A stretch of DNA of 58,491 bases, filler included, from Dugesia japonica (lineage: Eukaryota), in assembly GCA_001938525.1 (NCBI GenBank). It is 5 parts of 5 records of this genome, joined end to end, with 100 filler letters (N's around TTAATTAATTAA, not from the genome) between each part and the next. Parts side by side here need not be neighbours in the genome. Positions count along the whole stretch, not along the records: positions 39,696 to 48,497 come from MQRL01631347.1; 4 more parts are not named here. One strand, 5' to 3'. Position numbers and translations under genes: made by a program. This document shows, piece by piece, positions 12,955 to 48,497 of this stretch; position 1 is the first letter of the stretch, and each line of letters opens with the position of its first letter. Below the pieces are notes generated by a model, which saw nothing but the letters and a program-made list of their open reading frames with translations, ran no database searches and was not told the origin of the DNA.

Positions 12955-13463
12955 GTTAGTGAATGACCAATTTTTAATATTAAAGTTTTAATGTTTTTAA
13001 TTTTAATATTAAATCTGAAATTTTAAATTTTAAATTAAAATATGAAATTAATCATAAAATGTTAAATAATATATAATATTAAATATATCAGATCATTTGT
13101 ATTGATTTTAAGTTAAGTTACTAAGCGTATAATTAATGTTATATTAGTACATATCGTGTTGTTAAAATTAAGATAAAATATTGTATTAGAAGAGTTTTGA
13201 AAACTCAGATTATCAACATCAAAATTCAACTCCATAAAATTTATTTCAAAATAAAAAACTATGCTTAACACTTTTTGTTTATTCAAACAAATTGAAATCC
13301 CGTGTTTTCATTCTTGATCATTTTTAAAATTAATTTATTTAAAACATTTTATTTATTTAAAATTAATTCAATTTAATTTTATAATTACAATTATTGTGAG
13401 AATAATTGTTGGACTTAACCATTGATCGCACTTGAGGTTTCATTAAAATAAAGAAAAAGCTTC

Positions 13464-16463: not shown

Positions 16464-19400
16464 AATTCGTAGTGTTTTTATTGAAAATAAATTTTCTTCT
16501 GACTATATAATTAGTAATCAATATCAATGATAAAATATCGTTTTTATAGATGTGTAGGGATCACAGAATATTTTACAAATTTGGAGAGCCGCACACAAAC
16601 CCTTGTCTTAAATCATATTATTATATTACATTTAAATTATAGTTATTTTGTTGTAATGCTGAAAAATTTACAAGATTTCATTTTTTTAAAAATTTAGGAA
16701 AAGTGCTAATTACAATTTTAAAAAAAACCAAATTTAATGCACTTCAATAGATTTATTAACAATATTTTTGGATTTGTTACACAATTTTTGAGAAATCTTT
16801 TTAATGTTAATTTACTTATTTATTTTATTATCTTTATTTTAAATTTTATAATCTATTATTAGTTCATAATGTTTTTATTTCAATTTCTTTGGTATGCCGC
16901 TCATTTGCATTTAACGGATGCTTTAAATTTAGCTTTTTATAATTTTCACTTTGTTTTAATTTATAATTTTCTTGGGAACCATTTTCATCATTTTCTTCCG
17001 AATACTCAAGATTTAGTGTCATTGTATTTCTGATTTAGTTTATTTTCTTTACTCGTATTAATAATATTTTTGAAATTTTTAACAGTTCAATTACCAAATT
17101 ATCCATTTCTCTATAATTAACAACTAGTCTTTTTCTCCTGAATCTTTTCTTTTATTTATAATTATATTTCACTTCCACTTTTTTATTATTCTGCCCTGCC
17201 ATTCTTTTTTTTATTAAAAAATTCAGATTTCATTGACTTTTTAACTCCAAAATAATAAAATTTTAATGAAGAATTAAAACGGCTAGAAAATTTTCATTTT
17301 ATCTTATTACTAGAAAATAACCGATNTCAGAATTATTATTTAAATAATTTCAGATTTTCTTTGTGATATAATTTAAACAAAGTTGGATAAATAATTATTT
17401 CTATTTTTTTTAGAAAATTGACTGATAATTTAAATCGTAAGAATTGTGTAGATGGATTTTTGAACTCTTTCAGAATTTCCCATATACTATTGTTACATAT
17501 TAAGCAGTTTAAATCTTATCTAAACTAAAAAAATCAATCTTAACGGGATCAAATTTCGTTAACCACAATTAGAAACTTTTAAATAACTCATAGACTAATA
17601 ACTTTTTTTCACAACAAACGGATTACGTTGTTCTACATTATTTCCCACAATAAACTTCAAATTATGCATTTTTACATATGAAATTTAACATTTATTCAAA
17701 TATAATATAAGTTGTAGCAGTATATAATATAGGAATGGGCCTTATGCATCGAAGTTTTTAAACAGAACTTATTCGTTTATTGGTGCACCAATGCAGAAAA
17801 CTTGGTTTTCACCCTAGCCCTAATATAATAATTCTAATAATTATCGAAACAAACAAACAAATTTTGTTATTTTTACGTAATTCGCCTCTAAAAATATTGT
17901 GAATAAATGCGAGTAAACGTATTATTATCACAATCCATCATTTTCTAGTCATTACTCATACTGCAATCCGTCAGAATTTAAAGAAAGATGGTTGGAATTT
18001 TTTGAGGTATATTATGGAAAATTCAGTAAAACTACTATGAATAATTATATTTACTAATAAGGCTACCAAAGATAAAAAATAATTTAAATATTAATTTATA
18101 ATTAAATTTTGTAATAAAAAGACTCACTTACCATCATAACTCATTTGAAATAAATTCACTGTTTCACAAATTAGATTAAAGTAAATGTCAAACTTACCAA
18201 ACAAACACACTACTGATTAATTTATTATTAGAATTTAATTAAAATTTTTGAAAATCGATTTTACAAAAGTTTAGTCAAATAGTTTAATGGCACAGATTTT
18301 GGTGAATCAGGCTTTTTTATGGTTTTAACTTCAACTTCGACGTGATTCTTCTTAATTGAATACAAATTGATTTATTAATAAAAATTTTTTAATCAACTTT
18401 TAGACATTTTAGAGTTACAAATGTAATCATCATGCTTATCAACAGGCCCAGATTAAGGTGGGGGGCTAACCTGCCGACAGCTCGAGGTACTTAAACTTTT
18501 TTGTAAAATCAAGCAACTTAAATACATAAAGTGAAAAGTTTGCTTTGTCTTTGATACCAACTTTATATTCATTAAATATNNNNNNNNNNNNNNNNNNNNN
18601 NNNNNNNNNNNNNNNNNNNNNNNNNAAACATCAATATTTTATGTTTTTCAGAAAGAAAAGTTCCACATTATGAAATACTAATATTATTATAATATTATCT
18701 AAATTCTAATGTTTTCAGTTGAAACTTAGTTTACGTGACTACTGGCTGGCACTACACTTCTGAAATATATATTTATATATATCAGAGAATGAAACAAATG
18801 AAAGGGTAATACTAAAATAAATAAGAAAATAATCAGAAATAAAAGAAATATTAATCAACAAAATGGTAAGAAAATGATTTTTAAATAATAATAATTTGAA
18901 TTAAAAAGCACAAGAAAATATTGAACAAAATCTAGGGTAAAACAGTAATAAGAAAATAAAGATTAATAAGTTGTTGAGAAAACCAAGAAATGATTAAGTA
19001 TTAAAATATATAATAATTGAAGATAATAAATAGTTAGATGGCTCCAAAGAAACTAAGATAAAATAGTGCTCAGAAAAATTAATCAAATTATTTAAGTAAT
19101 CGAAAAAGAGAAGGTAAATAAAACCAGGTATATACATAATTATTTATAATTTATATAAATGTTAAAACTATTTATATATTAAAAAAAATTTTATTGATGA
19201 GAGAAAAGGAAAGATTAAAACAAATAATTATATTAAAACATTTTGATATTTTAAAGAGAAATGATAGGAAATAAAAAGCAAAATAAATCATCATCATCAT
19301 TATAAATAATAAAATATTAGATTATCAGTCAGATTTAAGTAGAAGAATTTTATTATTATTATTATAATTTTATATAAAATTTGAAAATGTGAAATTATAA

Positions 19401-24852: not shown

Positions 24853-27800
24853 NNNNNNNNNNNNNNNNNNNNNNNNNNNNNNNNNNNNNNNNNNNNNNNN
24901 NNNNNNNAAGAAGAAGAAGAAGAAGAAGAAGAAGAAGAAGAAGAAGAAGGAGAAGAAGGAGAATAATTATAATAAGAATGATAAAATTAATAATAATAAT
25001 AGTAATTATAATTAAATAAATAATAATGATAATAAAATAAATAATATATCAATCCTTTTCCTAATATCAACATTAGATCGAAATTTTAATAAATTTATTT
25101 CCTCACCCTACAGAACCAAATCACTGAAATTCAAATACTATTTTTAATATCAAATTTAAAAACACCATAAATTACAAATATTTTCATTTTGTGCAGAGAT
25201 TTTATGTTTAATCAACTTTTTTTGAATTATCATTAAAGATTTGATTGAATACACGAATTAAAACAATTAACAGAACTTATATTTAACATTTCTCTAATTA
25301 GTTCCCCATAATACATTGTTGTTTGTCCAAAGACGATACGAGATTATTCCATGAGAAAATTCTAAGAATGTCGAAAAAGGAGTAAAGAATAAGTGGTGGT
25401 ATAATGAATTAATTAACTGAATTAATTTCTTTAAAATTAATTTCATTTTCAAAATTTGTATAAATTTTTTTTGTAATCAACCGAACTTATAAATTATAGG
25501 ATATTTTTACTAATTTATGTTAAATTAAAGATTGATATTAGTTTTTTTGTCAGAGTATTCATACAGAGAAGGGATTAATTGGTTTTTTATTATTCTATTG
25601 CATTGTTTTTGTAAGTATAAATTGATTTATAATTACAATTATTGCGAGAATAATGGTTTTATGTAACCATTGATCGTTTTTCAGAATTCGTTTCAAAATT
25701 TTTTTCAAAATAAAAGTCGAAAATTATATTTATTATCAAAAACAAAAAAAATTGACCAAAGCTTTTATTTTAATGAAGTATAAATTGAACTCATAAATTG
25801 AACTCATTATATTTCAAATGACAGTTGAAACTAATATAAGCAGTAAAATGTTGTTATTCTTTTCAATTTTAAAATTATTCTTCTGTAACAAATTTAATAT
25901 CTAAAATTTTCCAAAATAACCTGAGTTTACAATCAACGTTCCCTCTAATTTTGAAAACCCGTGTGCGGGTTAAACTGCAATGTTGGCAAACCATATAAAT
26001 TAAAAGAAAATTGGTCAAAATATAAAACATCCCAAAATTTTTTTGTACTGTAATTTTATTTTTTAGTATGTAAATAAAAATTATAACTTATTATATTATA
26101 TTCAAACAAGAAGTGTGACTAATTTAATGAAAAGTTATAAATAGAAAACAAAAACAATGTACCTATATTAAATTCAGAAGGTAAAATATATAACTATAAA
26201 AAATATAAAATCATAATTTCGTGGGGGGATAAGAATGCTGAATGGGCAACCATTTTTATCTGGGCGGCCGCCCGCCTTCAAACCTTACAGGCAAAGTTGT
26301 TTACAATGGTCCTATGGATTGATTTCAAAGCGGAAATGATATAAAAATAATAACAATAACAAAAAATTATTTAATTGTTAATTAATTTTATGTATTATAA
26401 ACAATATAAATTAATCATTGTAAATAAAAACATACGCTTTTTAAAAAATCTTTGGAAAACAATTTGACCATAGGCATAAATTTTCCAAAATTGAAACTTA
26501 AAACAATTAAATGTATACTGAAAGAAAAGATAAACTTCGTTTTTATTAATGTTATTATTATTGTTTGATAAAATAACGTTATTTCCTTCAGTATCTTTCA
26601 ATTCAATTTTCTCTGTCGTTAACACATCATTAATATCATTTTCATTTAAGCTAAGTTCGTCGTAATTACATTCAGATTCTGTTTCCAGTGATTTTTCGTC
26701 GTCAGTTTCAACTTCTTTTGTTTTATTACAGAACGGATAATTGATTTTATTTTTTATCAAGTTAATTTGAAATTTTTTTTCAAGTTTACGTTTAAATATA
26801 GACTGATTTTGTTTGTAATTTTTATATATTGAAATTTGATTGGTTGTTGATGTTATTAATTTATTTTCTAGAAAATTAACTTCATAAGATTTTGATGTTC
26901 GATATTCCAAATGACATTTTAAAGCACGATTTGTTTGTTTGATGGTTTTTTTACGATTATTTAAATAGTTTATCACTTCAGAAACATCAAAGTTATTAGG
27001 AAATAACCGAAATCCGTCGACATTAAATTTATGCCTTTGATGATAAAATTCATCCAGGCAAGCAGCACATTCAATTTTACATAATTTAGAATTACGTTGA
27101 CAATATTTTTTCAGCCATTTTTTTCTTGATTTAAGAGGTTCAATTATGATTGCTCGGTCTAGTTCTATATTCTTGTTTTCTTTTTTGATGAGATTTCGAA
27201 TTCTATTTTTTCGTTCGATCAATTTCATTTCAAGCCAAATGTTATTATTAGTCATGTTGAACATTTATTTAATTAGAATTTTCATTTTATTTCTTTACCA
27301 ATATTATATGTTATAAAGAATATGGCTCATTGAAATTATTTATATGAATATTATTAATCAATTAAATATATAAATTATTAAATATGCTACTACATTTAAT
27401 AATTAAATTATTACAATTCTTTTTCAATGAAGTGAATTAAAATTTTTGTTTAATATACTTATTAATTATAATTTTCGAGAAATTTATTTTTTGGCCGACT
27501 TCCAAGTGTTTAAAAACTTCACTTAAGAACTCCTGAATAATTAATTCAATTTACCATGACTTTATTTCATTATATTTTGAAAATATTAAAAATAATGGAA
27601 CATTGTAAATACTACTAAAAAAGAGTAGTAAAGATTTTTCCGAATACCTTTATACCAATGGACATAATAAACATTGGGAAAGTATGCAAAAAGTAATCAC
27701 AATTCATAAATTTGTTATGATTAAGTGTTGTTTAAAAAACAAATAAAACGTGAAATAATCAATTAATCAATGTTTATTCACCAATCTTTTTAATTAAAAA

Positions 27801-39695: not shown

Positions 39696-41325
39696 TTAAA
39701 AATATTTAGCAGAAAATTATTTCATAACATTTCATATTTATTTCAAATCAAGCAAGTATTATTGTATAATGCAGGGCTGCCCAACATTTTGGTTACCGAC
39801 CACCGCACAACAAAATCTTTTCTTTTATAACGGATATACGATATCTTATAACATTAATTGCAACACCATTTAATAAATATTTAAATACAAATAATCAAAA
39901 TTTATTATACAAAAAATAATTAATAAATATTTATTTTATTTAAGCTCAACACGAAAATCAATGACTGCTTTTGTTTAGATAAGCGAAATTAAAAACTTTG
40001 TATAGCTTGTTTATTATATTTTATGATTATAGATTTAAGCACAATACTACAATTTAAAATCAAATCAATTAATATCAATAATATTTAAATAAAGTAAAAA
40101 ATATATATTGTCTATATACAATGTCTAATGTGGTTCTCTTCAATTTTACATTTATTATTTGCCATTTTCTCTCTAAATTTGAAATTTCTCAAAATTTGCA
40201 AATCAATGGATTAATGATTTAGATAATTAAAACAACTAATTATTATTAATAATTATATATAAAACTGGTTAAATGCTGCTAATTTTGCATCTGATAGTAA
40301 TGACATTACTTATGGGTACCCCTAATACATTTTTTTATGTCAAAATAATTTTCAATTAATTTAAAGTCACATTTGTAAACTAACGGTAGATTGAAATATT
40401 AATAACGTCTCTCAAAAGATTAATATTTGAGATATGGATGTGCATTGGAATCTAATTTTTCAAATTCATAAAATTACGTTTCGAAAGTTAAATATAGATT
40501 AATCAGATAACTAAAATAAATTTGATTATTTAAATCGCAAACCAGTAAATAAATATTTAAAAATAATGTAATGCTAGAATAAATCCTTGGTGAACCATTA
40601 TANNNNNNNNNNNNNNNNNNNNNNNNNNNNNNNNNNNNNNNNNNNNNNNNNNNNNNNNNNNNNNNNNNNNNNNNNNNNNNNNNNNNNNNNNNNNNNNNNN
40701 NNNNNNNNNNNNNNNNNNNNNNNNNNNNNNNNNNNNNNNNNNNNNNNNNNNNNNNNNNNNNNNNNNNNNNNNNNNNNNNNNNNNNNNNNNNNNNNNNNNN
40801 NNNNNNNNNNNNNNNNNNNNNNNNNNNNNNNNNNNNNNNNNNNNNNNNNNNNNNTATTTTTAAAATATTTCATCAAGCTACAAATAGAAAAAATAATGTC
40901 TTCATTATATTGTACTATAAATATGAAAAGTATGTGGCAACATGGTCACCGGGCAAGGATGTTTACATTATAAAAGATGTGAACTTTCAAACCGCATTTG
41001 TTAACACTCAAACCATATGAATTTTTACAATTCATAAAATTTTCTAACTGCTATGTAAATTTTAATAATTNNNNNNNNNNNNNNNNNNNNNNNTGTTATT
41101 TTTTACACTGCATTCGTAAACAAGGTGTTACTGACAATTCTAAATTATCTGTTGAGGTATGGATAAATCACACAAGCCAAAGTGTAGAACTGTGAACGCA
41201 CATTATTAAATTATTCTAGCTATATATACTTAAGATTTTTTTATTTTTAAAATTCTTTTGTTCATTGTTATTAAAATTTACCAATTACTTATTCTTATTA
41301 TTATGATTATATTTTTCCTTTTTGT

Positions 41326-41449
41326 TACAGGATTGCCAATTCAGTTTAATAAATTTCCATTTCAATTTAATATTTATAATTATGTTGATATTTAATATTA
41401 ATATATTAAATTGAAATGGAAATCTTTTAACTAAACTGGAAACCTTGTA
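41326..41449. mobile_element. Short hairpin MITE (Tc1/mariner-derived)
   Basis: About 50-bp imperfect inverted arms: tacaggattgcca..atttccatttcaatttaata / tattaaattgaaatggaaat..tggaaaccttgta. Confidence 0.6.
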
Positions 41450-42032
41450 TTATTTATTATTATAAAACATCAACTTTAAACTTAAATGAATATTTCTTCT
41501 TCTTCTTCTTCTTCTTNNNNNNNNNNTTATTATTATTATTTGGGTTGGAAACAAAATTCTTTTATCAATAAAAATATGCAATGGAAAAATGCAATAAAAA
41601 AGCGCATATCAATCATCAATGTAATCACCATTGTTCTGAAGCACATTTGAAGCACACTAATTGCATTCTTAAATATGAGGAATATAAGTGATGCAATTTT
41701 TCGAGAAATATATTATTTAATTAACAATGTTCATACAGGTCGCATCAACCTCAACATACATACGGGTGACATCAATCGCAACATGCATACATCAATATTT
41801 AATTATCAGAAATATATCCTACTCACAGAGACAATAATAATAAGTAATGATTAATTTTGATNNNNNNNNNNNNNNNNNNNNNNNNNNNNNNNNNNNNNNN
41901 NNNNNNNNNNNNNNNNNNNNNNNNNNNNNNNNNNNNNNNNNNNNNNNNNNNNNNNNNNNNNNNNNNNNNNNNNNNNNNNNNNNNNNNNNNNNNNNNNNNN
42001 NNNNNNNNNNNNNNNNNNNNNNNNNNNNNNNN

Positions 42033-42082
<50 letters not shown>

Positions 42083-42399
42083 ATTTGAGTTCACGTTATC
42101 ATATTTTGAGTTGGATGAACTATCACACCTCAACGGATGATATATAGATTTCATTACATTGTTAACAAATACGATGTAAAGATTCACACGGTTTGAGTTA
42201 TTAACAAGGTTTATTGTAAATGAGAATGAGGGAGAATTCACACTTCTGATAATGAAAACATCCTGTTCTCAAGTCCTCACTTCTCANNNNNNNNNNNNNN
42301 NNNNTATTGAAAATATCGATGATAAAGAGTAATAATTAATGTTTTACTAAAAATAAAACATTTAAAAATCTGACGTCTGACAAAATAAAAAAAACTGAC

Positions 42400-42596
42400 T
42401 TTGAAATCGGTAGAATTAGCCTCATTTAATAGACTAACACTAACAATATTCCATTCTGAAACAGTAACACTGTGAGATTTCCATAATGGTTTGCTTTCGC
42501 TATGTATTTTAATTAAAATATTTTGTTCTTGCTTTTAAATCTTACCAAAATACAGCTGGAAAACCAGTATCTTTATTAATAACAGATCTACAGGAT
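42400..42596 (-). CDS. Exon-pair cassette 5 (D) of the MAM-like alternative array
   Basis: Exons 42596-42546 (51 nt) and 42499-42400 (100 nt): SCRSVINKDTGFPAVFC|ESKPLWKSHSVTVSEWNIVSVSLLNEANSTDFK. Confidence 0.88.
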
Positions 42597-42733
42597 CTAG
42601 AATCATCAAAAAAACAACATTTAAACTTGTTATTTATTATTTAAATTATTAGGAGCAGACTTAAAGCAGATAAATAAACCAAAAGTAATACAATTTATGA
42701 TGAAAATTCATGGAATTAAGTCAAAAGTGATAC

Positions 42734-42950
42734 CTTAAAATCAGTTCCAGTTGCATTTGATAAAGATATTAAAACTTTTTCCCAAGTTCCCAATTGCTTA
42801 CTTGCGCTCAAAGAAGAAGAACTAGTCCATAATGGCCAACTATCGCTAAGATCAAAAGATACATTGTGAATTTAGAATAATATGGATATAATATCTCACC
42901 ACACCAAACGCGGATGTCCTGTTTCTTTATTAACTACGGTTTTACAGGAT
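42734..42950 (-). CDS. Exon-pair cassette 4 (C) of the MAM-like alternative array
   Basis: Exons 42950-42900 (51 nt) and 42845-42734 (112 nt): SCKTVVNKETGHPRLVC|DSWPLWTSSSSLSASKQLGTWEKVLISLSNATGTDFK. Confidence 0.88.
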
Positions 42951-43254
42951 CTAAGAAAGTAATCAATTAAAAGTCGACAATTAAAAGGNNNNNNNNNNNN
43001 NNNNNNNNNNNNNNNNNNNNNNNNNNNNNNNNNNNNNNNNNNNNNNNNNNNNNNNNNNNNNNNNGTTTAAATAAATTTCAAATATATCTAATTAAGATAT
43101 CTCAAGTTTTATATAAAGCTTTGAAAAAAATAAAAGAATTATCCCATTTTATTGTTTACTTGAAATTCTCTTAATTTAATTAATTATTAACCAATCAAAT
43201 TTTCAAAAAATTCTTTTAAAAAAACTGATATTCATTTAGATTTCTAATTACGGA

Positions 43255-43325
<71 letters not shown>
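43255..43325 (+). repeat. (AAT)n microsatellite
   Basis: Read directly from the sequence. Confidence 0.9.
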
Positions 43326-43952
43326 NNNNNNNNNNNNNNNNNNNNNNNNNNNNNNNNNNNNNNNNNNNNNNNNNNATATCATTCTCTAAGAGTTCGAATT
43401 AACAAACATAAATTTCATTTTGTTATATCTGAATGAAAAAAAGCATATAAGTATTTGAAATAGGTTTTAACAAGCAATTCCAATAAAGCCCAAGAATCGT
43501 TGTAAGTTAGAATTTGTTATGGATTAATTTATCAATAATTTTAATGATTCTAACAGGCATCTATTTAAATGATCGATTTATCATGAAAATACTGTCAACA
43601 TAGTTCCAATAAATTAGAATGAAAATATTTGATAAAATCTAAAAAAGCATTTTAATATTTAAAAACCAACAGAAAACGATTTATTTGAAGTGTATAAAGA
43701 AATTTATATAATTAATTAAAATTGAAGTCTAATTTTCATTCTAATTGATTTAAATAAAAGTATTTTTCATATAAAATTTGTAAAAATCTATTGATTTTAG
43801 TAATAAGCTATGAAACGTTTAAAATGGTATTTATAAATTCTTTTGAAACCAGTTTAAAAGTAATTTTTACAAAATAAATATAATATGAATTTGATTGTGA
43901 GTTAAACAGAAATAAATTATCGATTTGAAAATTTACACCGGAAAACACTGAC

Positions 43953-44146
43953 TTTAAAATCTGTTGCATTATCACTATTCAAATCAACTTGCACTTTTTC
44001 CCATCCCGAAAATACTCTATTTTCAGATGTCCACAAAGGTTTACTTTCACTAAATAAAAAGGTTGAGAACCCCAAGTGATTTATTGTAATCTTACCAAGA
44101 GACAATAGGAAAACCAGTATCTTTATTAATTACTGATCGACAAGAT
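43953..44146 (-). CDS. Exon-pair cassette 3 (B) of the MAM-like alternative array
   Basis: Exons 44146-44096 (51 nt) and 44049-43953 (97 nt): SCRSVINKDTGFPIVSC|ESKPLWTSENRVFSGWEKVQVDLNSDNATDFK. Confidence 0.88.
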
Positions 44147-44531
44147 CTACAATCAAATAAAAATTTCATCACAATTCAAATGTTTATTTAAAAAAAAAAC
44201 AGATAAAAATAGACGAGGAGATACCACAGAGACCATTTAAAAATATAATATCAATTTATTAATAAAAATGATTAATTAAAAGAAATATATATAGAAGAGT
44301 AATTATTCAGCCAGTGAAATATCTTTACTATGAAATTTTTCAAAAAAGATCACAAAACAGGAATTTAAAGCAACCATTTTTATCATAAATAAATTCTTCT
44401 AATGATTCACAGATGTTTTTTCAGGAAATACCGTGACTAGTAAGCTTTAAAATTATTATTAATTCATTTTAAAAAAAGTAAATTGGTAAAAAAAAGTAAT
44501 AAAAACAAAATTTTTGTAATAAATAGTCTAC

Positions 44532-44742
44532 CTTAAAATCAGAACTATTCGATTCTGTCATTGATATTGACACTTTTTTCCAATTATTTTTAATGACTTC
44601 ATCTTCATTAGGAATATCACTACGCCATAAATTACGACTATCACTATTTTATTGGGAATTATAGCATTTATGTTAGAAATATATTTGTTACCAAACTAAT
44701 CTAGGATCACCAGTTTCCTTATTGACTATTGATTTACATGAT
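44532..44742 (-). CDS. Exon-pair cassette 2 (A) of the MAM-like alternative array
   Basis: Exons 44742-44692 (51 nt) and 44643-44532 (112 nt): SCKSIVNKETGDPRLVC|DSRNLWRSDIPNEDEVIKNNWKKVSISMTESNSSDFK. Confidence 0.88.
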
Positions 44743-45123
44743 CTAAAATCATTATTGACAAAGTCAATCGTTAACAATATGCTATGAATAATGATTTAGA
44801 CTTCAAAATACAGCAGAGCTAACAAACAATTTGAAAATCCACGTAATAATGAATAGAATCAAATATAGAAAAGCATCAGATATATTAATTTTTTACAAGA
44901 AATTATGAATATTTACCATCAAAATAGAACTAAAAAAACAATTCGGAAANNNNNNNNNNNNNNNNNNNNNNNNNNNNAAAAAAAATTAAGCGCATTTTTA
45001 AAAAAATAATTTTTACATTTCAAATTAAGTTAAATTAGCTGTAGAAAATAGCTATTGATTAAAATAAGCAATTATAAGTAATTACTAAGATTTATACTTG
45101 AAAAAATGTAATTTTGAAAGATA

Positions 45124-46345
45124 TTAGGCCATTAAGTATGAAATGTCGGATTTCGTGAAGTCCAAAGTTTAACAGTCGATATTTTTAATATTTGACTTTG
45201 ACAAATATTTGTTTTGCTTGACTATATAGATACGCCATTACTCTTTTAAGCCCACGCTTTAATTTCTGATTATATTCTGAATTATTTTTTTCCATTAAAT
45301 TTTCAGAAACTATGGATATGTCAAAAATTCATACTATTTTCGAATGAGTTCCGTCGTGGAACTAATGCAAGACAGACAGTTCGAAATATAAACGAAGTGT
45401 TTGTTAAGAGTATCATCACTGAACGAATGATACAGAGATAGTTTCAGAAATTCCGTTCTGAAGATTTTAGTAACGAAAATAAGACACGTGGGCGACCACA
45501 AACGAAGGATAATAATAGTGATCTCAAAGCTTTAGTGGAAGAGGTTTCTTCAAAAAATACTCTCAAATTAGTGGCGAAGTTCAACGTTTTCATTCCAACA
45601 ACGATCTACCATTAAAAACAAATTTACAAGGTCAAAAGGTTAGACCTATGGGTTCCTTATGAATTAACCGACCAGCAGAAAATAAATTGTTACGATGTTT
45701 ACTATCACGATATGACGGCGAGTAATTTCTTCAACGTGACATGTCATGAAAAATGTATTCGTTTCGACAATCGTAGGTGAATATTTCGATGGTTGGATAA
45801 AAATGAAGCAACAAAACAGAATTCAAAGCTGAATAAGCTAATGGTATCTGTTTGGTGGATCAGTGCTGGTATTATCCATTACAACGTTTTGAAACTTGGT
45901 AAATTCATTACAGCAGATGTCTACTGTAATCAATTTGACGACATAATGAAATTGTTTGCAATTAACCAACCGAGACAGGTCAATTTTCTTGAAGACAACG
46001 AACGACCTCATGTTGCCCAAGTAACGCTGCTCAAACTGCAGGAATTGGAATTGGAAACTCTCTATCACTTATCGTATTAACTAGCTATTAGTACAAGGGA
46101 TTATATTCATTTCCAAGCATTAGACAACTTCTTGGTGGGAAAATTATTCAAATCAGAAGAGGCTGTGAAAATCACCTTTCTATCACTAAACTTTTTCGTT
46201 ACTGGAATAAACAAAATGCCACTAAGATGGCAGAATTATGTCNATTGTTTGGTAGATGTTTCAAATAAATGTATTGATATTTGCTTGTTATATTATAATC
46301 CGAAATTTTGATTAAAAATCCGACATGTAATACTTAATACCATAT
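45124..46345 (+). mobile_element. Near-full-length decayed mariner inserted inside the cassette array
   Basis: TIRs ttaggccattaagtatgaaatgtcggattt / aaatccgacatgtaatacttaataccatat with TA flanks. WVPYEL, KLMVSVWW..GIIHY, EDNERPH. Confidence 0.9.
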
Positions 46346-47455
46346 TATTAAAAAAAATTTAATTAAATAACTCGTGATAAGAAAAATAAGCTGAAGAAGA
46401 TATCAAAAGATATATTCTATGTAATATTATAAATATACATTTCAAATTTTTCATTCGCATTTTAAATATTTTAACATACTTTTATTTTACATACAAAAAT
46501 CAATTATAATAATTATGAGGCTAATTTGATTTTGAATTTACTATTTATTAATATCTTTAATTAATTAAAATATTCCTTGCATTAACATATAGTCATTAAA
46601 CCTATTCAAGGAAATTTAAACAAATAAAAATATTTAAAAAACTGTTTGTAATTAAAAGAAAATAATAAGATTAATTCCAAGAAAAACATTAAAATATTAA
46701 TCACTTAAAAATATATTTGAAAAAAATTAATAATTTAAAAAACATTTAAAAAAACAAAAAACTATTGTACATTAATATTTCTTAAAAGAATAATTAAGTG
46801 AAATTTTTAATTAAAAACTTCAAGTAAAATTTAAAAAATANNNNNNNNNNNNNNNNNNNNNNNNNNNNNNNNNNNNNNNNNNNNNNNNNNNNNNNNNNNN
46901 NNNNNNNNNNNNNNNNNNNNNNNNNNNNNNNNNNNNNNNNNNNNNNNNNNNNNNNNNAATAAAAATCTATTAATATTAATCCGTTTAGAAAACAATTATT
47001 TTTAAAATTTTTAAATTTATAAATTTAAATCAATTATAATTCGATAAATTTTGAAATAATAACATTCAAAAATAATTACCATCACACAAAATCATCGAAT
47101 TAGAAAATTAAAAAAAAATAAATACATATTTTATTATTAGTTTTCTAAAAATTATCGGTGTGCATAGCAACAAATAATTATGGTTAACCAATTATTAAAA
47201 TTCGAATGAAGTGAATATTTTGAAANAAAAAAATCAAAAAAAAACAAGATTTTTGTTATCAAAAAGAACAACACTTTAATGAATATGAAAAATTTTAAAT
47301 AAAAAAATTTCCAAATGTAAGGAATAATTTATTTATTTATTTTATGATAAATACAGAAGACAAAAAAAGAATTTTAATGAAAAAATGAAAAAAAATTTAC
47401 ACTGAAAGTTAAAAAGATTTTAAGAAATTTGAAAATCTTCAAACTGTTTGCTAAC

Positions 47456-47658
47456 TTTATAATCAGAAGACAATTGCTCCATGGTTATTGAAACATGATT
47501 CCATTCGCTTTTTGATTCTTTTACCTTACTACTCGTCCAAATAGGATCACTTGAACTAGATGTCAACACGAAATTACGAATTTTTAATTTTCCAAATTAC
47601 AACTTACCACAGGACTGTTGGTTTCCCATTGTTGTGATCCATTATTTGTTTGCAGGAT
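47456..47658 (-). CDS. Exon-pair cassette 1 (E) of the MAM-like alternative array
   Basis: Exons 47658-47608 (51 nt) and 47555-47456 (100 nt): SCKQIMDHNNGKPTVLC|SSDPIWTSSKVKESKSEWNHVSITMEQLSSDYK. Confidence 0.85.
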
Positions 47659-48497
47659 CTTTAAGTTGAAGTTTAATGTTAAGATTTTAAAATCATCAAT
47701 TATATTTAATATTTTTATAAATTTTCTATAATTTGCAGAGCTTCAAAAATGTTTACAAGCAAACAGGACAGAATAAATTATATTTATTTCAAAATATGAT
47801 TATTGAAAAAAAAAACAAAAAGGAAGTATTGAAAGAAACATTTGAATTTTTGATTTCTTGTCAAATCAGCTGAAATTTTCCATTAAAATATTCTTTTAAT
47901 GCAATTAATTTGAAAATAATTTGAATTGAATTATTATAAAAATATAATTAATAAATAATTCCCTAAATAGGGATTTCTTTCTAAAAATTAAAAGATATTT
48001 AGTTTATTATAATTTCAATTTGACAATGATTTTTAATTATTAAATTGTCAAATTTAAAATGAATTTTATTGTAAAATTTATTGATAGGATTGTTTTTAAA
48101 ATAAAAAAATGATTTTAAGAAATACCAATATAAATTTTTAATTATGGAATTTTAGAAATATATAATTAGAAATATATAATATATATATAATTTTATTGTT
48201 AACATGGTTTTTAAAGTAATTAAACGATATTAGAAATAAATAAATAAATTTTTTAAGCTTATGAAAACTGCAGTTGAAAAAAGAATTATTTAATTTGTTA
48301 TTAAAAAACNAATTTATAATAAATTTTAAATGGACTAGACTTTTAAATTCAGCGATGAGTGTGCCAAACTCATATAACAGTTATAAAATAAAGTGTATTA
48401 AGAATCACATGAATTCTTAATTTATCAACAAAGTTTTCCATTACAATTAATTATTTATAACAAATCCATTTTCACAAATTAAATGCCTTTTTAAAAC

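Follow-up and report, generated by a model that had tools for sequence, protein, structure and literature searches.

That a cell-surface receptor can be diversified by large arrays of mutually exclusive exons is textbook knowledge for arthropods, with Dscam1 as the example, and in the clustered protocadherins of vertebrates the choice is made by promoter. To our knowledge, no comparable system has been established outside arthropods and vertebrates. MAM domains, in receptors of the RPTPmu type, take part in homophilic adhesion. Here we describe an array of five tandem two-exon cassettes in the flatworm Dugesia japonica (assembly GCA_001938525.1). The window, that is the whole stretch of DNA analysed, is 58,491 nucleotides (nt) long and consists of five genomic parts joined by filler; all five cassettes lie in the part at positions 39696-48497 (record MQRL01631347.1; 8.8 kb, ~21% G+C), which is referred to below as the piece. 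The five units are almost certainly alternative, one-at-a-time portions of the outer MAM domain of a membrane protein, and the piece is very probably taken from within the second array of variable exons (cluster II) of a flatworm gene for a single-MAM membrane protein, the cassettes of which are spliced one at a time.

In Drosophila Dscam1, as in the flatworm gene, tandem paralogous variable exons are found in one cell-surface gene, in several independent clusters that are freely combined (the exon 4, 6 and 9 clusters of Dscam1). In addition, each variant codes for part of a beta-sandwich domain in both systems, and the binding surface varies while the scaffold is kept. The domains of Dscam1 are of the immunoglobulin type, whereas the gene in the Platyhelminthes codes for a MAM domain and both of its clusters build one single domain. 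The numbers also differ, being 12 x 48 x 33 in Dscam1 and tens per cluster, roughly 15 x 20, in the flatworm gene, as does the unit of choice, which in cluster II is an exon pair (intron-less in some copies of Schistosoma japonicum). Moreover, the variable exons of Dscam1 can be doubled or skipped without loss of the frame and use docking/selector RNA pairing, whereas the flatworm frame forbids zero or two cassettes and no pairing signal was found in the scans given below. With frame-enforced mutually exclusive exon pairs the array shares lengths that are not a multiple of three, such that only single inclusion is productive; those systems are usually two-exon choices, whereas here there are at least five cassettes in the piece and ~20 in relatives, each of them a two-exon cassette.

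All five units are on the minus strand, A at 47658-47456, B at 44742-44532, C at 44146-43953, D at 42950-42734 and E at 42596-42400, and an earlier note, made from the sequence alone, had placed them and sized their exons and introns correctly throughout. Cassette A, the most diverged copy, begins with an exon of 51 nt (47608..47658), the first base of which ends the previous codon and is followed by S-C-x14 and two nt of a Cys codon; after an internal intron of 52 nt comes an exon of 100 nt (47456..47555; ...IW.S...W..V...DYK), which is followed by GTTAGC (47450-47455). Cassette B has a 51-nt first exon (44692..44742; repeat family D1), with 45/51 bases in common with the metagenome contig L002, an intron of 48 nt and a second exon of 112 nt (44532..44643, then GTAGAC at 44526-44531). 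In cassette C the first exon (44096..44146, 51 nt), the intron (46 nt) and the second exon (43953..44049, 97 nt) are followed by GTCAGT (43947-43952). Cassette D comprises a 51-nt exon (42900..42950), the 3' splice site of which lies 39 nt from the assembly gap at 42989-43064, a 54-nt intron and a 112-nt exon (42734..42845, then GTATCA at 42728-42733), while cassette E comprises a 51-nt exon (42546..42596), a 46-nt intron and a 100-nt exon (42400..42499, then GTCAGT at 42394-42399). The 5' splice sites of the internal introns are near GTAAGW, unlike those after the cassettes. With splice boundaries marked by a stroke, every cassette reads AG/A-TCN-TGY...TG/GT for exon 1 and AG/Y...AAR/GT for exon 2, and all are open. 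The two exons meet within a split Cys codon, and the spliced peptide of 49-54 residues follows the pattern S-C-x14-C-x4-[LI]W-x-S...W-x-x-V...D[FY]K, with an NxS/T sequon directly ahead of DFK in four of the five cassettes, in agreement with the earlier count.

The coding lengths of A to E are 151, 163, 148, 163 and 151 nt, all of them 1 mod 3, and each cassette is entered in phase 2 (first base A) and left in phase 0, so that any one of them fits the same flanking exons but none or two would break the frame. All four joins of one neighbour to the next run into a stop within three to seven codons; both the phases and the early stops had been described in the earlier note, and the same stops were found. 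It could still be argued that all cassettes are carried in series in one long mRNA, with the frame restored by unseen linker exons or alternative splice sites, to give a protein of many partial MAM-like repeats. The spacer between the alternative cassettes D and E (42597..42733, minus strand) bears directly on this, since it is gap-free and only 137 nt long, and a scan for a stop-free AG..GT micro-exon able to restore the frame showed that none is possible within it. The 137-nt length had previously been attributed to the C-D spacer, which in fact measures ~1 kb and contains two gaps. The assembly gaps at 42989-43064, 43326-43375, 44950-44977 and 46841-46957 all fall in inter-cassette spacers, and none of them lies within an exon, an internal intron or a stretch used for the frames: D and E lie together in the gap-free block 42305-42988, B and C in 43376-44949, and A in a third block. 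The five cassettes are a minimum count, and more could hide in the gaps only if the gap sizes are underestimated.

Database searches also bear on the reading as serial repeats. A profile of the five second exons, searched against 1.84 billion proteins, matched P0002, a Schistosoma mattheei model of 287 residues that contains four cassette copies (expectation value (E) 2.9e-9), and P0004, an open reading frame on the metagenome contig L002. The contig of P0002 (L001) shows the same plan of a 51-nt exon, an intron of 46-59 nt and a second exon of ~100 nt. The copies in P0002 are joined by linkers of three kinds, namely separate exons of 54 and 102 nt and a stretch in which the 5' splice site is read through, none of which is conserved between cassettes, and these linkers are read as inventions of the gene finder. 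Models stringing two to five cassettes together recur in deposited data (P0002, P0006, P0008, P0028 and P0030, from the old assembly of S. mattheei, Trichobilharzia szidati, S. curassoni, Echinococcus granulosus and E. multilocularis). Taken at face value these older models support serial inclusion, but they are likely to be a systematic misannotation of the locus, which they serve to flag. In view of the heterogeneous, unconserved linkers of P0002 and the D-E spacer, of the newer S. mattheei annotation, with one cassette per isoform, and of the size of a lone cassette, which is only about a third of the MAM fold, serial repeats are considered very unlikely. Two further matches of the profile, to the repeat protein P0001 and to the bacterial protein P0003 (GWNKVSISLSG), were set aside as chance.

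Contig L002 (ENA ERZ27256860, contig k141_4077181, 1-608) carries one complete cassette with the same exon-intron plan, and it and its protein P0004 are the nearest relatives of cassette B. The exons of L002 and B can be aligned and their introns cannot; L002 is from a related species or represents an unsampled paralog. In the reverse direction, a profile built from the S. mattheei cassettes alone placed the five second exons of the window as the top five among 435 stop-free segments of the piece, with E values of 1.7e-7 to 0.01 (A 0.01, B 4e-5, C 1.7e-7, D 1.8e-4, E 8.6e-7). The corresponding exon-1 profile gave four of the first exons in the window as its top four (E 9e-5 for A and 0.011 for E), with D ninth at E 1.3. 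Cassettes B-E cluster together, without one-to-one pairing to cassettes of schistosomes.

The arrangement of the whole protein is seen in the orthologs. Residues 1-200 of P0007 used as a query retrieved ~15 S. mattheei entries named "MAM domain-containing protein", all on one 91.9-Mb contig; the isoform set, from a chromosome-level annotation, consists of P0007 and P0009-P0022. The same query also found S. mansoni A0A5K4F7P9 and orthologs in S. japonicum, Opisthorchis, Paragonimus, Echinococcus, Taenia, Mesocestoides, Hymenolepis and Spirometra. Heterobilharzia and two monogeneans, Cichlidogyrus and Protopolystoma, came in addition from a profile search. The signal peptide is identical in the full-length S. 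mattheei isoforms and S. mansoni A0A5K4F7P9, with the exception of P0021, which has a different, shorter start. The C-terminal part, which runs from LILEGTIPAGYPDARICVDNITSYTEPC in the last MAM strands via the membrane segment to the tail, is 100% identical across these isoforms and A0A5K4F7P9. Variation in the S. mattheei isoforms is confined to two blocks, an N-terminal block of ~120-150 residues (at least seven versions) and the cassette block (at least 11 versions), and each isoform carries exactly one cassette. The two blocks are freely mixed, in that the same N-terminal block is found with six or more cassettes, and the same cassette with different N-terminal blocks. The residue preceding the cassette is always Gly, which fits a preceding exon ending in GG followed by the A that is the first base of the cassette. 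The mutual exclusion proposed in the earlier note is thus supported by orthology, through ~15 S. mattheei isoforms with identical ends and one cassette each, tandem genomic cassettes, and lengths of 1 mod 3 in all 20 cassettes counted below. The gene product is predicted to be a single-pass membrane protein in which one MAM domain is the sole recognisable part of the ectodomain. Its cytoplasmic tail shows strong conservation from flukes to tapeworms (P0023, P0026, P0028, P0035), with the motifs NLW.YIGGKE, DLPDVV.P.GRVV, PPPGYDEA and a C-terminal YGLPVAEI, which suggests that its intracellular partners are conserved as well.

At the genomic level, the order of the locus in orthologs is signal-peptide exon, cluster I, cluster II, constant exon, and exons for the membrane segment and tail. 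Cluster I consists of tandem exons of ~400 nt that each code for the N-terminal MAM half and finish with GG of a Gly codon, and the constant exon codes for the last MAM strands (LILEGTIPAGYPDARICVDNITSY; pattern ILEG.IPAGYPDA.ICVDNIT.Y). In S. japonicum (L003, SKCS01000025) cluster I has at least 15 units at 3.2-17 kb, one of them with in-frame stops, cluster II gives ~19-24 matches at 20-60 kb, the constant exon is at 62467 and the membrane exon at 63658. In E. multilocularis (L004) there are at least six cluster-I units and ~17 cluster-II cassettes (7.1-17.8 kb), with the constant exon at 18490. The S. japonicum cluster-I unit with in-frame stops (13052-13414) is a pseudo-exon. Cassettes are tandem on one strand in the genomes of relatives, and each of the 20 cassettes that could be cleanly modelled has a length of 1 mod 3 (five in the window, three in L001, one in L002, nine in L003 and two in L004, thus from four species and one metagenome contig). 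The Schistosoma MAM protein (the S. mattheei isoforms, S. mansoni A0A5K4F7P9, S. japonicum EWB00_003944) and its flatworm orthologs share with the D. japonica piece the 51-nt exon, short intron and ~100-nt exon, the split Cys codon, the motif S/A-C...G...C-x4-LW.S...W..V.L...D[YF][KQ], the phases, the 1-mod-3 length and the one-strand tandem array. They differ from it in that the piece is much more AT-rich (~21% G+C, where the loci retrieved from relatives have 29-31% and 42%) and holds only five cassettes and no constant exon. Cassettes end in DFQ in cestodes and in DFK or DYK in the window, as in trematodes.

Three S. japonicum cassettes, at 26262-26423, 27558-27746 and 28667-28841 of L003, lack the internal intron and are fused, from which it follows that the two exons form a single coding unit, interrupted by an intron that can be lost. 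The exon pair, which the earlier note had taken as the unit of switching, is present in all five cassettes of the window.

The same plan bears on the suggestion that each cassette belongs to a transcription unit of its own, as a tandem gene or an alternative first exon, in the manner of the clustered protocadherins or chelicerate sDscam. Arrays of variable exons chosen by promoter do exist in other recognition genes, and the shared upstream exons are not seen within the piece. Nevertheless, every cassette begins at a phase-2 3' splice site, without a start codon or signal peptide, and in every full-length ortholog isoform it comes after the signal peptide and a cluster-I unit. The spacers of 137 and 385 nt are, moreover, too small for other exons or for a promoter plus leader exon, and independent units can be given next to no probability.

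The assignment to the MAM family, which had been made from a resemblance of motifs, was borne out through the orthologs. Pfam MAM (PF00629) matches residues 34-214 of P0014 with 48.2 bits (cut-off 26.4) over profile positions 1-158, and the cassette occupies residues 135-185; P0019 (44.6 bits) and P0020 (38.4 bits) also exceed the cut-off. In the proteins of S. mattheei, S. mansoni and S. japonicum alike, the homologous segment lies inside the Pfam MAM domain. An ectodomain profile compared with the PDB found the MAM structure of neuropilin-1 (5l73, E 4e-6), with W..V.L...YK-LILEG aligned to W...V.L...YQ-VIFEG. An AlphaFold model with an alignment of 10 rows was poor (predicted local distance difference test (pLDDT) 50.7) and was not used. 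With a second alignment, in which the paralogous exons of L001, L003 and L004 and the second exons of the window were included as partial rows, the AlphaFold2 model of P0014 residues 17-216 reached a pLDDT of 88.1 and a predicted template modelling score of 0.83. Foldseek ranks 1-14 of this model in the PDB were all MAM-containing entries (neuropilin-1 5l73 at E 5e-8, LAST-MAM, meprin alpha and beta, SR-C, PTPRK and RPTPmu). The cassette is at residues 119-169 of the model and contains strands at 120-124, 131-135, 138-142 and 153-158.

Compared with the MAM domains of RPTPmu/PTPRK, neuropilins and meprins, the flatworm domain has the same fold (Foldseek 5l73 at E 5e-8, 8a1f, 2v5y, 4gwm) and belongs to the same family, PF00629, and the stretch W...V.L...Y-x-[VL]-I-[FL]-E-G can be aligned. 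Those domains are invariant and lie in multidomain ectodomains, whereas the flatworm MAM domain makes up the whole ectodomain and ~85% of it comes from alternative exons. The hairpin Cys-x14-Cys, encoded by exon 1, is specific to the flatworm family.

In the mechanism that is proposed, each mRNA would take one cluster-I unit and one cluster-II cassette between shared exons. Exon 1 of the cassette would supply a Cys-bridged hairpin, and exon 2 two strands, LW.S and W..V.L, with a loop of variable length between them and a loop that is usually glycosylated after them, so that the cassette would amount to about four of the ~eleven strands of the jelly roll. Zero or two cassettes would shift the frame, and only single-cassette mRNAs would encode the membrane-anchored protein; the products with none or two are expected to be lost through nonsense-mediated decay. 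Exchange of the hairpin, the loop and the glycosylated loop, together with the variable N-terminal half, would change most of the MAM surface. By extension from the relatives, we infer that D. japonica splices its five cassettes as they do.

The cassette exons are under selection. Elsewhere in the piece, 22% of 17-codon windows and 5.4% of 33-codon windows are stop-free, which puts the chance of the open frames at ~1% per cassette and at ~1e-10 for the five together. Between cassettes the exons can be aligned, but not the internal introns or either flank. Synonymous sites are saturated (dS > 1), and the ratio of non-synonymous to synonymous substitution (dN/dS) is 0.21 for C-E, 0.25 for C-D and 0.5-0.9 for the other pairs. 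The earlier note had claimed purifying selection, and selection on the exons is supported both by open frames and intact AG/GT sites despite saturated synonymous sites and by the dN/dS range of 0.21-0.9. These data also bear on the possibility that the array is mostly dead, with one working exon pair and the other cassettes decaying as duplicates that are never, or only unproductively, spliced. The weak 5' splice sites after every cassette and the strong divergence of cassette A would be in keeping with such decay, and the S. japonicum cluster-I unit with in-frame stops shows that pseudo-exons do occur in this gene family. Against this, all five cassettes are open with AG and GT intact despite saturation, their exons are conserved and their introns are not, and at least 11 different cassettes are used in the annotated S. 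mattheei isoforms. In seven small transcriptome-sized runs of the same organism (five studies), whose "RNA?" labels are guesses, 0.18-0.22 of the sampled words of 42400-44742 were present, and a content of the eight B-E exons alone would give an expected share of 0.181. This fit to all eight exons points indirectly to their expression, and a mostly dead array appears improbable.

Several points weigh against the splicing of one cassette at a time in D. japonica, and the guessed labels of these runs are one of them. The conclusion for this species is drawn from orthologs, and the isoforms of relatives are taken from database annotation. The constant exons, cluster I and the signal peptide lie outside the 8.8-kb piece, and membership of one gene is likewise drawn from the orthologs. 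Pfam gave no MAM match for the spliced cassette peptides of the window alone, only a sub-threshold DUF4246_N, although this is expected for a lone cassette that is about a third of the domain. None of the five cassettes is followed by a consensus 5' splice site, which would fit regulated exon choice. Finally, k-mers in the flanks of the five cassettes were not above shuffles in a search for a shared docking/selector motif, and in the complete S. japonicum locus the complementarity found by a scan without gaps did not exceed that in controls.

A literature search found no description of the gene or its splicing, and the Kassiopeia paper does not cover flatworms. The isoforms are already present in public annotation; what is rated as new is that a mutually exclusive array occurs in flatworms and on a MAM fold, that two arrays build a single domain, and that the unit is an exon pair. 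Since MAM domains take part in the homophilic adhesion of RPTPmu-type receptors, isoform-specific recognition is proposed, by analogy, as the most likely use of the diversity; the roles suggested in the earlier note (recognition, immunity or a host interface) are speculative. A broader interpretation, which is possible but doubtful, is that this is an undescribed, phylum-wide flatworm counterpart of Dscam1, in which a MAM ectodomain is assembled from two arrays (roughly 15 x 20, hundreds of isoforms), is conserved from monogeneans, flukes and tapeworms to D. japonica, and confers cell identity through isoform-specific, probably homophilic binding. If this were true, the isoforms might serve, for example, the self-avoidance of neurons or the recognition of tissues, perhaps with variation of the surface as a further use in parasites, and the gene would represent a third independent solution, on a different fold, that could be studied in planarian and schistosome models. 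Isoform codes in flatworm cells, the enforcement of exclusivity for an exon pair and the use of variation by parasites would then become testable.

Some other sequence around the cassettes was also noted. An Rfam scan of the piece matched no family. Pure AAT/TTA microsatellites at 43255-43325 (24 copies) and 42033-42085 (18 copies) abut the gaps at 43326-43375 and 41862-42032, which are probably unassembled microsatellite stretches. The intron between cassettes A and B contains the relic of a mariner-like DNA transposon at 45105-46364, with terminal inverted repeats of 49 nt (45105-45153 and 46316-46364) that are 73% complementary. Its transposase frame, on the plus strand, is decayed, and is matched by Pfam Transposase_1 (PF01359) with 49.5 bits on 45793-46080.

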